From Perkinsela sp. CCAP 1560/9 (Eukaryota > Protista > Euglenozoa: Kinetoplastea), in NCBI GenBank assembly GCA_965644495.1, contig CBFFSA010000001.1, positions 1,736,001-1,800,000 on the forward strand: 64,000 nt of DNA. The letters are read 5' to 3'. Position numbers and translations under genes: made by a program. The notes beneath the pieces were generated by a model, which was not told the origin of the DNA, did no database searches, and saw nothing but the letters and a program-made list of their open reading frames with translations. Shown here one piece after another: positions 55,030 through 58,570 of this stretch (positions are counted from its first letter, which is position 1; each line of letters begins with the position of its first letter).

Positions 55030-55098
55030 GCACATTGATAATGCATAGTTACTGCACATTGATAATGCATAACGTGCCGCACATTGATAATGCATATA
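55030..55098 (+). repeat. Minisatellite GCACATTGATAATGCATA, left part (continues at 57762-57842)
   Basis: 3 units to the left and 4 to the right of the Tc1 element, all in the same orientation. Confidence 0.9.
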
Positions 55099-55381
55099 CA
55101 GTAACTAACAAAAGTGTTCAAATGTTTTCACAAATTTTAATGTTTTTATATTTTACAAAAGAGATGCAGAGGATAATGCAGTAGTATATTACAGTAGTGT
55201 AGGCTGGAGTAGTGCTTACATTCCCACGTACTTAGACTTCATCAACGATCTTACAATAAAAAACTATGAAAGATATAATGCGATCCCAACACTTGAACAC
55301 TTTTTTCACTTTTTTGAGATTATTTTTTTTTGACCAAAACTTTGCCTTACTTCACCCTTACCAAACCAAAATGACCAAAAC

Positions 55382-56401
55382 TTAATACTTCGTAAGTCCC
55401 CCCTTCGCCCTAATTACTGCCCTTAAACGACGGGGCATGCTGCGGACAAGAGGAAGACATGCACTCGGAGGAAGGCCTGCCCACGCTTTTTGGGCGCGTT
55501 CCCAAAGTTCCAACATTCCTACGGGAGGATCTGGATGATCCGCAGTCGACTTTTTGAGCTCGCCCCATAGGTGCTCTATGGGATTTAAATCGGGAGACTG
55601 CGGGGGCCAGTCTAGGACACACAATTCTTGTAAACGAAGGAATTCCCGGGCCTTCTTACTCGTGTGCTTTGGATCATTATCTTGTTGGAAGATGATCCGG
55701 TCCTTCATGACTTCCAACTTGTGGAGGGAAGGAGACAAATTCTGTTGAAGTATTTGAACGTACTGTTCAGCATTCATGTTGCCATGAACCAGAGCAATGG
55801 AGCCCACGCCGTGAGCCATCATACACCCCCATACCATGATGGATCCCCCACCGTACTTCACGGTGCTGTGAGTATTTCGCTCTGAAAGTGCTTCCCCAAA
55901 GCTCACCCACGCCCACCGGCTGCCATTCGACTCGAAACGGCAGATCTTACTTTCATCAGTGAAAAGCACATGGCTCCAGTCGGCGTTCGTCCAATGCTCA
56001 TACTTCTTTGCAAAGGCAAGACGTAGAGCTTTGTGACGCTTCGTAAGGTGGGGTTTCCGTAATTTCTTCTTCCCCTTCAAACCACGCTTCCGAAGGGAAA
56101 CCCGAATGGTTTGGGGCGAAACATCTGCAACCCCCTCATCTCTCAACCTTTTACTGGTCGCGACTGCATCCTTAGTTGCACCGCTGGTGATGAGGCGGCG
56201 GACGCGATTGGAGCATGTCTCTGTAAGCTTGCGAGGGCGATCTGTTTTCGGTTTGTTAACTAAGTTGGGTAGGTACTTTTTCTTAATGTTACTTACATTT
56301 CCTACGCTCAATTGTAGATCTGACGATACCTTCCGAATTGATAATCCGTTCTTTAGTTTTTCTATAACAAGCCTACGTAGATCACTGGGTGTACTGCGCA
56401 T
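55382..56401 (-). CDS. Tc1 DD34E transposase, left copy
   Basis: FTDESK, QQDNDPKH, SPDLNPIE with 34-aa D-E spacing; ATG 56401. Confidence 0.95.
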   Translation of the reverse strand: MRSTPSDLRRLVIEKLKNGLSIRKVSSDLQLSVGNVSNIKKKYLPNLVNKPKTDRPRKLTETCSNRVRRLITSGATKDAVATSKRLRDEGVADVSPQTIRVSLRKRGLKGKKKLRKPHLTKRHKALRLAFAKKYEHWTNADWSHVLFTDESKICRFESNGSRWAWVSFGEALSERNTHSTVKYGGGSIMVWGCMMAHGVGSIALVHGNMNAEQYVQILQQNLSPSLHKLEVMKDRIIFQQDNDPKHTSKKAREFLRLQELCVLDWPPQSPDLNPIEHLWGELKKSTADHPDPPVGMLELWERAQKAWAGLPPSACLPLVRSMPRRLRAVIRAKGGLTKY

Positions 56402-56458
56402 AAAAAGTATAGTAAATGGAGTAAGATTTTCTTTATTTACCTTGCGTTTCATTGCACT

Positions 56459-57478
56459 ATGCGCAGTACACCCAGTGATCTACGTAGGCTTGTTATAGAA
56501 AAACTAAAGAACGGATTATCAATTCGGAAGGTATCGTCAGATCTACAATTGAGCGTAGGAAATGTAAGTAACATTAAGAAAAAGTACCTACCCAACTTAG
56601 TTAACAAACCGAAAACAGGTCGCCCTCGCAAGCTTACAGAGACATGCTCCAATCGCGTCCGCCGCCTCATCACCAGCGGTGCAACTAAGGATGCAGTCGC
56701 GACCAGTAAAAGGTTGAGAGATGAGGGGGTTGCAGATGTTTCGCCCCAAACCATTCGGGTTTCCCTTCGGAAGCGTGGTTTGAAGGGGAAGAAGAAATTA
56801 CGGAAACCCCACCTTACGAAGCGTCACAAAGCTCTACGTCTTGCCTTTGCAAAGAAGTATGAGCATTGGACGAACGCCGACTGGAGCCATGTGCTTTTCA
56901 CTGATGAAAGTAAGATCTGCCGTTTCGAGTCGAATGGCAGCCGGTGGGCGTGGGTGAGCTTTGGGGAAGCACTTTCAGAGCGAAATACACACAGCACCGT
57001 GAAGTACGGTGGGGGATCCATCATGGTATGGGGGTGTATGATGGCTCACGGCGTGGGCTCCATTGCTCTGGTTCATGGCAACATGAATGCTGAACAGTAC
57101 GTTCAAATACTTCAACAGAATTTGTCTCCTTCCCTCCACAAGTTGGAAGTCATGAAGGACCGGATCATCTTCCAACAAGATAATGATCCAAAGCACACGA
57201 GTAAGAAGGCCCGGGAATTCCTTCGTTTACAAGAATTGTGTGTCCTAGACTGGCCCCCGCAGTCTCCCGATTTAAATCCCATAGAGCACCTATGGGGCGA
57301 GCTCAAAAAGTCGACTGCGGATCATCCAGATCCTCCCGTAGGAATGTTGGAACTTTGGGAACGCGCCCAAAAAGCGTGGGCAGGCCTTCCTCCGAGTGCA
57401 TGTCTTCCTCTTGTCCGCAGCATGCCCCGTCGTTTAAGGGCAGTAATTAGGGCGAAGGGGGGACTTACGAAGTATTAA
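56459..57478 (+). CDS. Tc1 DD34E transposase, right copy
   Basis: Same protein except GRPR instead of DRPR. Confidence 0.95.
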   Translation: MRSTPSDLRRLVIEKLKNGLSIRKVSSDLQLSVGNVSNIKKKYLPNLVNKPKTGRPRKLTETCSNRVRRLITSGATKDAVATSKRLRDEGVADVSPQTIRVSLRKRGLKGKKKLRKPHLTKRHKALRLAFAKKYEHWTNADWSHVLFTDESKICRFESNGSRWAWVSFGEALSERNTHSTVKYGGGSIMVWGCMMAHGVGSIALVHGNMNAEQYVQILQQNLSPSLHKLEVMKDRIIFQQDNDPKHTSKKAREFLRLQELCVLDWPPQSPDLNPIEHLWGELKKSTADHPDPPVGMLELWERAQKAWAGLPPSACLPLVRSMPRRLRAVIRAKGGLTKY

Positions 57479-58171
57479 GTTTTGGTCATTTTGGTTTGGT
57501 AAGGGTGAAGTAAGGCAAAGTTTTGGTCAAAAAAAAATAATCTCAAAAAAGTGAAAAAAGTGTTCAAGTGTTGGGATCGCATTACATCTTTCATAGTTTT
57601 TTATTGTAAGATCGTTGATGAAGTCTAAGTACGTGGGAATGTAAGCACTACTCCAGCCTACACTACTGTAATATACTACTGCATTATCCTCTGCATCTCT
57701 TTTGTAAAATATAAAAACATTAAAATTTGTGAAAACATTTGAACACTTTTGTTAGTTACTGTAGCACATTGATAATGCATACAGCACATTAATAATGCAT
57801 ACAGCACATTGATAATGCATACAGCACATTGATGATGCATTATTTGGAAATTGAATGTGTTTTCAAGAAATAGTGAACACTCGTCTCTGCTCCCGGTGAG
57901 GCCCCGGAGTTGCGAGAGGCCTCCATACCCCACAGCTACCACCTTCCCCCTCCTATTTAGCGGGGCTCGCTCGAGCGATGAAACAGACGAAAAAATATTT
58001 GACACGAATGATAGCCGAAAGAATATGAAACAGACGAAAAAATAGTTGACACGAATGATAGCCGAAAGAATATGTGGGTAGCACCCGGTCAAAAAATCAG
58101 TCCCGCGGCAAAAAGTACGCTGGGCGCCAAGATGTCAAGTTTGGGGTGCCATAGGAGTAGGGTGGACACAC

Positions 58172-58570
58172 TTGGTTATTCTGGATTCTGACTCGTCTAT
58201 CACGAGTATGTCCTACATAGAGACGCTCAAAAAGGTAACATTCCCCATGAATTGTATTTTTCGACAAGATGGGGCAACGGCACACACCGCCCATGCCTCT
58301 AAGGACTACATTACAAGTAGAATGAAAGATTTATTAAAGAATTGGCCCCCCAATTCACCAGACCTTTCCCGCATAGAAAACGTCTGGTCTATGGTTCAAG
58401 AGGCAGTAGAACAAACCCCATCGAAAAACCTTCACTTATCCGATGTGTACGAAAAGTATGGTCTTCTTTGCCTCAAAAAGTAATCGACAAAACGGTCTTA
58501 AGCTTTGACTCTCGCCTTAAACAGTGTATAAAATTGAACGGCGAAAAAGCGACAAAATGGAAATTTCCCT
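58172..58570 (+). pseudogene. Tc1/mariner-like transposase remnant
   Basis: FRQDGATAH, WPPNSPDLSRIENVW, RLKQCIKLNG. Confidence 0.8.

Follow-up and report, generated by a model that had tools for sequence, protein, structure and literature searches.

We found that a Tc1-type transposon of Perkinsela sp. CCAP 1560/9 is built as a near-perfect mirror image with a complete transposase gene in each half, and that this form is the standard one in a whole clade of such elements in this kinetoplastid-type genome. We could not find this architecture described for the superfamily. The element lies in a 64,000-nt stretch of contig CBFFSA010000001.1 (hereafter, the window; assembly GCA_965644495.1, positions 1,736,001 to 1,800,000), and its coordinates below are those of the window. 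The parts of the element and its flanks are as follows.

55031..55096 (+), flanking minisatellite on the left side, with an 18-nt core GCACATTGATAATGCATA and variable linkers
55097..55098, left copy of the TA target-site duplication
55099..56402 (-), left arm, comprising the 3' terminal region and a complete transposase gene that is antisense on the + strand
55099..55313, left terminal region of about 215 nt, equivalent to the TIR of conventional relatives, with a 24-nt motif at 55103-55126 and its inverted copy at 55288-55311
55382..56452 (-), left transposase ORF, 356 aa as listed; the start equivalent to that of the right copy is the ATG at 56401-56399, and the extra 17 codons lie in the spacer
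56403..56457, 55-nt non-palindromic spacer, purine-rich in its first half and pyrimidine-rich in its second
56458..57761 (+), right arm, comprising a complete transposase gene and the 3' terminal region
56459..57478 (+), right transposase ORF, 339 aa
57547..57761, right terminal region of about 215 nt, with motif copies at 57549-57572 and 57734-57757
57762..57763, right copy of the TA target-site duplication
57764..57841 (+), the same minisatellite continuing in direct orientation on the right side

A repeat search and a base-by-base comparison confirmed to the base the structure described in the first-pass annotation. The inverted arms (55097-56402 and 56458-57763) are 1306 nt long including the flanking TA and 1304 nt without it, and 1303 of the 1306 positions are complementary, with exactly three mismatches at 55275/57585, 55871/56989 and 56241/56619. 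The complementarity stops at the TA on the outside and at the spacer on the inside. A 1.3-kb inverted repeat of 99.8% identity cannot arise by chance. The two predicted proteins differ only by GRPR (right) versus DRPR (left) and by the 17-aa N-terminal extension of the left ORF read from the spacer, the difference at 55871/56989 being synonymous. Pfam searches found DDE_3 (E = 3e-15) and the paired-like helix-turn-helix domain HTH_Tnp_Tc3_2 (E = 1.5e-9) in both ORFs, and 34 residues separate the second D (DNDPKH) from the E (NPIEHLW), placing the element in the DD34E group. Both ends read TA/CAGT, with GCATA and TA preceding CAGTAACTAAC on the left and GTTAGTTACTG followed by TA and GCACATT on the right, and the 20-nt minisatellite unit (GCACATTGATAATGCATA plus linker) runs in the same orientation on both sides.

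Several lines of evidence indicate that the element has moved as a unit, although transposition itself is inferred from polymorphism and duplications. Contigs from three other sequencing runs of the same organism carry the exact empty site, reading GCATATA and then GCACATTGAT with a single TA, showing that the insertion is polymorphic. Seven loci that retain both termini (full palindromes and their deletion derivatives, at different flanks) have TA duplications. The core inference of the first-pass annotation, a mobile fold-back architecture in which the gene lies inside the inverted repeat, is thus supported, and more strongly than that annotation supposed. Its further suggestion, that read-through transcription would yield a long hairpin RNA able to silence the element, is only made plausible by our data: the centre is predicted to fold as a perfect hairpin (-288 kcal/mol for 361 nt, z = -42), and the genome encodes Piwi-domain proteins.

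The centre of the element, consisting of the spacer and both arm starts, recurs at at least 6 other loci of this family. In family 1, it was found in the window element and at loci C5:827k, C11:275k, C7:706k, C12:226k and C18:154k (named by contig and position). In a 79%-identical subfamily (subfamily 2), the copy at C1:2925k has 1233-nt arms, whereas the copies at C4, C5:721k, C2, C13 and C1:1308k keep 22-107 nt of the opposite arm plus a homologous spacer in either orientation. In family 3, which is 52% identical at the amino acid level, the copy at C1:3080k has 1300-nt arms with 3 mismatches, a 95-nt spacer and two intact 336-aa ORFs, C21:182k is a second full copy, and many derivatives have different breakpoints. 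Family 4 (47%), which rests on one locus, has a 44-nt inverted arm start and a 41-nt spacer at the ATG. In subfamily 2 and families 3 and 4, the centre is placed 0-2 nt before the ATG. The 55-nt spacer of family 1 is homologous to the 58-nt spacer of subfamily 2 and is found in either orientation at other loci. We found no evidence that the spacers are decayed palindromes, since local alignment of one half against the reverse complement of the other was no better than shuffles in all four families (p = 0.29-0.95), and only the purine-to-pyrimidine switch and a 10-bp RNA stem with G-U pairs were seen.

We searched families 1-4 for a conventional 5' end and found none in any copy examined. Every candidate (copies L012, L019/L020, L028, L034, L035 and L040) resolved into a deletion derivative of the palindrome, and each single-ORF copy examined had its own breakpoint. 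By contrast, Tc1/mariner families at 25–33% identity in the same assembly have 38-150-nt TIRs and one ORF, and relatives from outside this genome at 44-47% have 212-224-nt TIRs and one ORF. Two families at about 47-49% identity (L039 and L042) show neither a centre nor TIRs and are uninformative. Families 1-4 form one clade, albeit with moderate support (93/90), and families 1 and 3 are each other's best hits among 5.8 billion proteins, two searches of which found nothing closer than 49% outside this sample.

Divergence between families contrasts with the near identity of arms within elements. Between families 1 and 2, dS is about 1.0 and dN/dS is 0.12, and the terminal region is more conserved (85.6%) than the ORF (78%), whereas the arms within an element differ by only 0-0.25%. 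When the window element was compared with a haplotig of the C18 locus, 7 sites differed in both arms alike and 6 in one arm only, and between haplotigs of the C18 locus the interior of the element is inverted relative to flanks that are about 99% identical. These changes shared by both arms, together with the interior inversion, point to arm-to-arm recombination. The one arm-specific site shared between the two full family-3 palindromes could not be interpreted, because their spacers lie in opposite orientations.

We propose, with good though not complete confidence, that the element is an autonomous (or very recently autonomous) cut-and-paste transposon of the Tc1 (DD34E) group whose canonical form is a complete palindrome, in which two copies of the transposase gene plus its terminal region of about 215 nt are joined head to head 0-2 nt upstream of the start codon across a short unique spacer. 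In this view, because both outer ends are the same 3'-type end in inverted orientation, they form a perfect pair of transposase substrates, and the whole 2.66-kb unit is cut out at TA/CAGT and inserted into a TA like any Tc1 element. That its own transposase moves it is inferred, as is the role of gene conversion, rather than re-formation, in keeping the arms alike. The layout would have been inherited by a clade of at least four families, down to 47% protein identity, and the same palindromic nature would make the element fragile, with copies decaying by deletions that remove the centre or most of one arm and producing the many single-ORF and fold-back remnants.

An alternative, which we consider unlikely, is that the true master copies are single-ORF elements carrying a short inverted repeat around the start codon, and that large palindromes arise repeatedly as dead-end by-products of break repair, through fold-back priming at that repeat after excision. 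Near-identical arms would also be expected if each palindrome were re-made from one arm. The arms of the subfamily-2 palindrome are 100% identical while the element differs by more than 1% from all other copies, and single-ORF copies with intact ORFs and both termini exist, such as L034 with TA on both sides; palindrome formation driven by short inverted repeats probably operates in other eukaryotes, such as on Tetrahymena rDNA and in yeast. However, the retained piece of the opposite arm differs in every single-ORF copy (13+45 nt, 18 nt, 22-38 nt, 107 nt, 150+ nt, or a break inside the spacer), which is the pattern of independent deletions from a longer palindrome and not of one master form. 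In addition, no copy examined has a 5' end with sequence of its own, L034 keeps only 13 nt of the outer terminus, probably too little to bind transposase, full palindromes carry differences private to a single arm, and the C18 inversion indicates that arms recombine in situ.

It is more improbable still that the palindromic copies are mobile but no longer autonomous, being moved in trans by another Tc1 family's transposase with ORFs that are intact only because the copies are young. All subfamily-2 copies examined carry stops, each at different positions, the left ORF of the window copy has DRPR in place of the conserved GRPR, and many other Tc1/mariner families coexist in the genome. Nevertheless, the dN/dS of 0.12 shows long-term selection on the protein, intact ORFs exist in families 1 and 3, two per element, and terminal regions differ between families (CAGTAACTAAC versus CAGTCAGCAAAA), as expected if each family co-evolves with its own transposase. 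A local accident, such as a one-off inverted duplication or two truncated copies that landed head to head, or a chimeric palindrome created by long-read library preparation or assembly, is very unlikely. Palindromic chimeras can occur as long-read artefacts, no read or contig spans the whole palindrome among the k-mer contigs of other strains that we could examine, and a second assembly with the same structure (ERZ24900291), which supplied an alternative haplotig, is 100% identical over 7 kb and derives from the same data. However, the flanks are in direct orientation and differ on the two sides only as an insertion predicts, the arms carry three real differences, and a short-read-derived 115-nt contig from another run covers the whole spacer plus about 30 nt of each arm. 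The recurrence of the junction at many loci and in four families, and the absence of palindromes from conventional families in the same assembly, also contradict this explanation.

The element shares with conventional Tc1-like DD34E elements (Tc1, Tc3 and Sleeping Beauty-type IR/DR elements), and with its nearest sequences, the metagenomic elements L061, L063 and L065, a transposase with a paired-like HTH, DDE_3 and a DD34E triad, a TA target duplication, CAGT termini, and a terminal region of about 215-224 nt carrying two copies of a roughly 24-nt motif. Conventional elements have one gene between a 5' and a 3' inverted repeat; here the inverted repeat has swallowed the entire gene, giving two genes and a 41-95-nt unique centre. 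The two motif copies in each terminal region, 161 nt apart, are inverted relative to each other rather than directly repeated as in Sleeping Beauty-type elements; the conventional relatives L061 and L065, which have 224-nt TIRs, show the same outer/inner inverted motif pair 158-165 nt apart. Foldback-type elements, including Drosophila FB, C. elegans Tc4, Galileo of the P superfamily, and the Tm1 Mutator/Foldback of root-knot nematodes (PMC3169594, PMC3573991), are likewise structurally unstable and consist almost wholly of a long inverted repeat, but their arms are non-coding and built of short tandem sub-repeats, and the transposase gene, if present, is single and sits in the central loop. 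Here the arms are the gene, the 55-nt loop is non-coding, and no direct-repeat families occur inside the arms apart from the motif pair. Bacterial composite transposons such as Tn5 and Tn10 would also have two inverted, transposase-encoding modules, use of the outer ends and a target duplication flanking the whole unit, but each of their modules is typically a complete element with two ends, with cargo between them; here the arms stop at the ATG, no terminal sequence lies near the centre, each module lacks an inner end and cannot move alone, and there is no cargo. Near-identical arms around a unique spacer, concerted changes in both arms and inversion isomers are probably also features of human Y-chromosome palindromes, the yeast 2-micron plasmid and plastid inverted repeats; those are not transposons, whereas here the palindrome is itself the mobile unit.

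Tc1/mariner elements are the textbook case of the simplest eukaryotic transposon, with one gene between two short inverted repeats, and a clade that has lived for a long time (synonymous sites are saturated between families) as complete palindromes with two genes shows that the superfamily tolerates, and can stably inherit, a radically different body plan. The clade is a natural system for studying how long perfect palindromes survive in a eukaryotic genome, how arm-to-arm conversion works on a kilobase scale, and how palindrome fragility shapes the spectrum of non-autonomous derivatives. Our literature searches found no palindromic two-gene Tc1/mariner element and no Tc1 report for kinetoplastids, and the only paper found on the subject states that only retrotransposons and Merlin remnants were known in kinetoplastids (PMC8101967); this 21-Mb genome holds many Tc1/mariner families, some of them polymorphic between strains.

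More tentatively, we speculate that the palindrome is an adaptation to a genome without gene-specific promoters, a possibility that the evidence leaves open but that we regard as less likely than not. Transcription in kinetoplastid-type genomes runs one way through long polycistronic units, and a mirror-image element would therefore always present one transposase gene in the sense direction, whichever way it lands. A simple trans-splice acceptor within the spacer was rejected, because the first AG after the pyrimidine tract lies beyond the ATG in families 1-3; hypothetically, the antisense copy of the lysine/glutamate-rich N-terminal codons could supply a pyrimidine tract and the purine-rich half of the spacer could supply AG acceptors for trans-splicing of the downstream copy. 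The same read-through transcript might fold into a 1.3-kb hairpin that feeds RNAi, making the element self-limiting, and the duplicated gene with arm-to-arm conversion might act as a built-in repair copy that slows decay. If the idea of orientation-independent expression is right, the element would be a clear example of a transposon architecture shaped by its host's mode of transcription.

Comparison of the inverted sequences base by base showed two long arms that differ at exactly three positions (55275/57585, 55871/56989 and 56241/56619) and whose complementarity ends abruptly at the flanking TA on the outside and at the spacer on the inside. Each arm holds a full ORF.

55097-56402, first inverted arm, 1306 nt
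56458-57763, second inverted arm, 1306 nt, separated from the first by a 55-nt spacer
55382-56452, minus strand, left transposase ORF, 356 aa
56459-57478, plus strand, right transposase ORF, 339 aa

Both ORFs contain HTH_Tnp_Tc3_2 and DDE_3 domains, and their translation shows 34 residues between the second D and the E. Of the three arm differences, one lies in the 3' terminal region, one is synonymous, and one turns the conserved GRPR of the right copy into DRPR in the left copy. The extra 17 residues of the left ORF are simply the spacer read in frame. The ends of the element read TA|CAGTAACTAAC... and ...GTTAGTTACTG|TA, and an 18-nt minisatellite core, GCACATTGATAATGCATA, is repeated in the same orientation on both sides. 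The first-pass annotation had described a wholly palindromic Tc1 transposon with two head-to-head intact transposases, and every statement of fact in it is correct.

To ask whether the structure is real and represents an insertion, we examined k-mer contigs from four sequencing runs of the same organism, which probably derive from other strains given the many flank differences. In three of these runs, a contig matches the left flank up to 55098 (...GCATATA) and then continues GCACATTGAT, which is the sequence following the right-hand TA, so this is the predicted empty site with a single TA. A 115-nt contig from one run (X2) covers 56373-56487, comprising the whole spacer with about 30 nt of each arm. 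The structure also appears in ENA assembly ERZ24900291, but that contig is 100% identical to the window over 7,020 nt, indicating that it is the same data and not independent support. Although none of these runs came from the assembled isolate itself, an assembly chimera and a chance head-to-head landing are excluded by the three arm differences, the direct orientation of the flanks, the empty site and, above all, the recurrence of the architecture at other loci. One minisatellite unit to the left of the insertion (55047-55055), the linker reads TA GTTACT G, which are the last seven letters of the element's end (GTTACTG) next to a TA; this may be a footprint of an earlier excision in the same repeat array, or it may be chance. 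Only about 400 nt downstream of the palindromic element lies a further transposon remnant, and the site seems to attract transposon insertions.

58172-58483, plus strand, fragment of a different Tc1/mariner transposase (DDE_3, E = 2e-8, profile positions 69-137)

We searched the genome assembly (G000; 21.0 Mb in 110 contigs, designated C1 and so on, with the window at C1:1736001-1800000) with the spacer plus right arm as the DNA query, followed by BLAST on the retrieved loci, which are numbered with the prefix L. The identical centre recurs at other loci of the same family (family 1, 91-99% identical). The copy at C18:153.5-155.0k keeps both termini with an internal deletion in each arm, those at C11:275k, C7:706k and C12:226k have the opposite arm cut down to 107, 56 and 0-1 nt, and that at C5:827-829k has a 997-nt foreign insertion at the centre (L003 504-1500). 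The left end of this insertion (...TTAGGCTCTTCGTTAAACGCGGTGGT...) matches the arm motif of roughly 120-nt hairpin-like repeats seen at other loci (L034 5200-5322 and L037 131-251), an unrelated and unidentified repeat family. Head-to-head copies whose centre is deleted occur at C5:807k, C1:2018k and C9:528k, and the remaining loci are one-arm fragments. At one locus (L005, beyond position 2652; C1 from about 1986129), a 99.9%-identical family-1 arm runs into a stretch of N at position 210 of the arm, exactly where the centre of another palindrome would lie.

A subfamily at 79% DNA identity (family 2) has a palindrome at C1:2924.7-2927.3k with 1233-nt arms that are identical inside the element. 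The seven letters outside the TA on each side of this palindrome (L036 2159-2167 and 4765-4773; C1:2924.66k and 2927.27k) are themselves inverted repeats with two mismatches (TGATAGA / TTCATCA); the element may have landed in a palindromic target or inside another repeat. The apparently single copies of family 2 (C4, C2, C13, C5:721k, C1:1308k and C2:779k) all keep 22-107 nt of the opposite arm and a homologous 58-nt spacer, in either orientation. A protein search then revealed family 3, at 52% amino-acid identity, in which the copy at C1:3079.5-3082.2k has 1300-nt arms, three mismatches, a 95-nt spacer, two intact 336-aa ORFs and TA flanks. The copy at C21:181.4-183.8k is a second full copy that runs into the contig end, and more than ten further loci are derivatives. 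The single-ORF family-3 copies each have a different breakpoint: L034 keeps the outermost 13 nt (CAGTCAGCAAAAG) fused to the last 45 nt of the missing arm, L035 keeps 18 nt of the missing arm, L040 breaks inside the spacer, and L041 keeps more than 150 nt. A fourth family (47% identity, C6:577k) has a 44-nt inverted arm start and a 41-nt spacer at its ATG. In all four families the arms meet 0-2 nt upstream of the ATG, and among the copies examined we found none with a 5' end made of sequence of its own.

In contrast, more distant Tc1/mariner families in the same assembly (25-33% identity; loci L047-L054) are ordinary, having 38-150-nt TIRs, about 1.3 kb between them, and one ORF. The closest relatives outside this sample have 44-49% identity, and those that lie on long enough contigs (L061, L063 and L065) are ordinary too, with 212-224-nt TIRs around about 1.1-1.2 kb and one ORF. 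Their TIRs carry an outer and an inner copy of a roughly 20-nt motif in inverted orientation 158-165 nt apart, which is exactly the pattern in the outer 215 nt of the window's arms. The palindromic elements therefore look like a conventional ancestor whose 5' repeat was replaced by an inverted copy of the rest of the element.

Elements with both termini, including full palindromes of families 1, 2 and 3, are flanked by TA on both sides at seven loci with unrelated flanks. Together with the empty site in other strains, this shows insertion of the unit by the usual Tc1 mechanism. The terminal 215 nt are better conserved between families 1 and 2 (85.6%) than the ORF (78.4%), the inner 3' UTR (68.6%) or the spacer (58%), as expected for transposase-binding ends.

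In a maximum-likelihood tree, the four palindromic families form a clade (ultrafast bootstrap 93, SH-aLRT 90) apart from the conventional outsiders, and families 1 and 3 are each other's best hits in 5.8 billion proteins. Between families 1 and 2, dN/dS is 0.12 and dS is about 1.0, while against family 3 the synonymous sites are saturated; the transposase has therefore evolved under selection for a long time since the families split. The arms within an element, however, differ by only 0-0.25%. If the palindrome is ancestral to the clade, the arms must evolve in concert, and two observations show that they do. In a comparison of the window copy with the C18 haplotig over the outer 536 nt, seven sites differ in both arms alike, six in a single arm, and none in an arm-specific shared way. 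In addition, the C18 locus is present twice in the data, in G000 (L037 2020-3523) and as an alternative haplotig (L059 2538-4487), with flanks about 99% identical, and the flanks align in one orientation while the interior of the element aligns in the other. The arm carrying the 104-820 deletion and the spacer have swapped sides, a flip-flop polymorphism that is most simply explained by recombination between the inverted arms; one allele has an extra 447-nt deletion, the G000 allele having since lost 662-1108 of the other arm. Homogenisation is not unconditional, because old copies do drift apart: the arms of locus L060 are 86-97% identical.

Long palindromes tend to be fragile, and the spectrum of derivatives fits this. 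It includes deletions spanning the centre (C5:807k, C1:2018k, C57 and C11:413k), loss of most of one arm at many loci, and rearranged centres, such as a 15-nt duplication and an 84-nt loss in the family-2 palindrome. Family-2 copies carry different stop codons, so they decayed independently after a recent burst.

The host is of the kinetoplastid type: the spliced-leader core CAGTTTCTGTAC occurs four times in the window, and 19 of 21 ORFs of at least 250 aa lie on the plus strand. In such genomes, genes are generally transcribed in long one-way units and matured by trans-splicing. A mirror-image element always offers one gene in the sense direction, which is an attractive, though only hypothetical, reason for the architecture. 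In all four families the spacer is purine-rich in its first half and pyrimidine-rich in its second, and each gene is therefore preceded by a pyrimidine-rich stretch on its own strand. The first AG after that stretch lies beyond the ATG, so a simple acceptor there is unlikely. The antisense of the lysine/glutamate-rich N-terminal codons provides another pyrimidine tract, followed by the AG-rich half of the spacer, and we hypothesize that this could serve as the acceptor region. A read-through transcript would fold into a perfect hairpin, and the genome also encodes three tandem, apparently identical 973-aa ORFs with a Piwi domain (C7:656178-681371; 118 bits each, spaced about 11-13 kb apart), a recent triplication of an Argonaute-like gene, as well as two weaker Piwi-domain ORFs. 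The proposal in the first-pass annotation that such a hairpin RNA could silence the element is therefore plausible, although it is supported by inference only.

Six full-text searches of the literature found no Tc1/mariner element with the gene duplicated inside the inverted repeat. Foldback elements, composite bacterial transposons and large genomic palindromes each share one aspect of the architecture, but none shares the combination. The only paper found on DNA transposons in kinetoplastids states that, before its report of Merlin remnants, only retrotransposons were known there (PMC8101967). Contrary to this published picture, DNA transposons are abundant in this kinetoplastid-type genome, which contains at least eight distinct Tc1/mariner families, many with intact ORFs of 339-397 aa in several identical-length copies, plus a hAT dimerisation-domain ORF (L059 4871-5494). 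Our analysis supports and widens the interpretation of the element as a mobile palindrome. We consider it likely, with fairly high confidence, that this two-gene palindrome is the canonical form of a clade of Tc1-like transposons, mobile, ancient relative to the identity of its arms, and maintained by arm-to-arm recombination.
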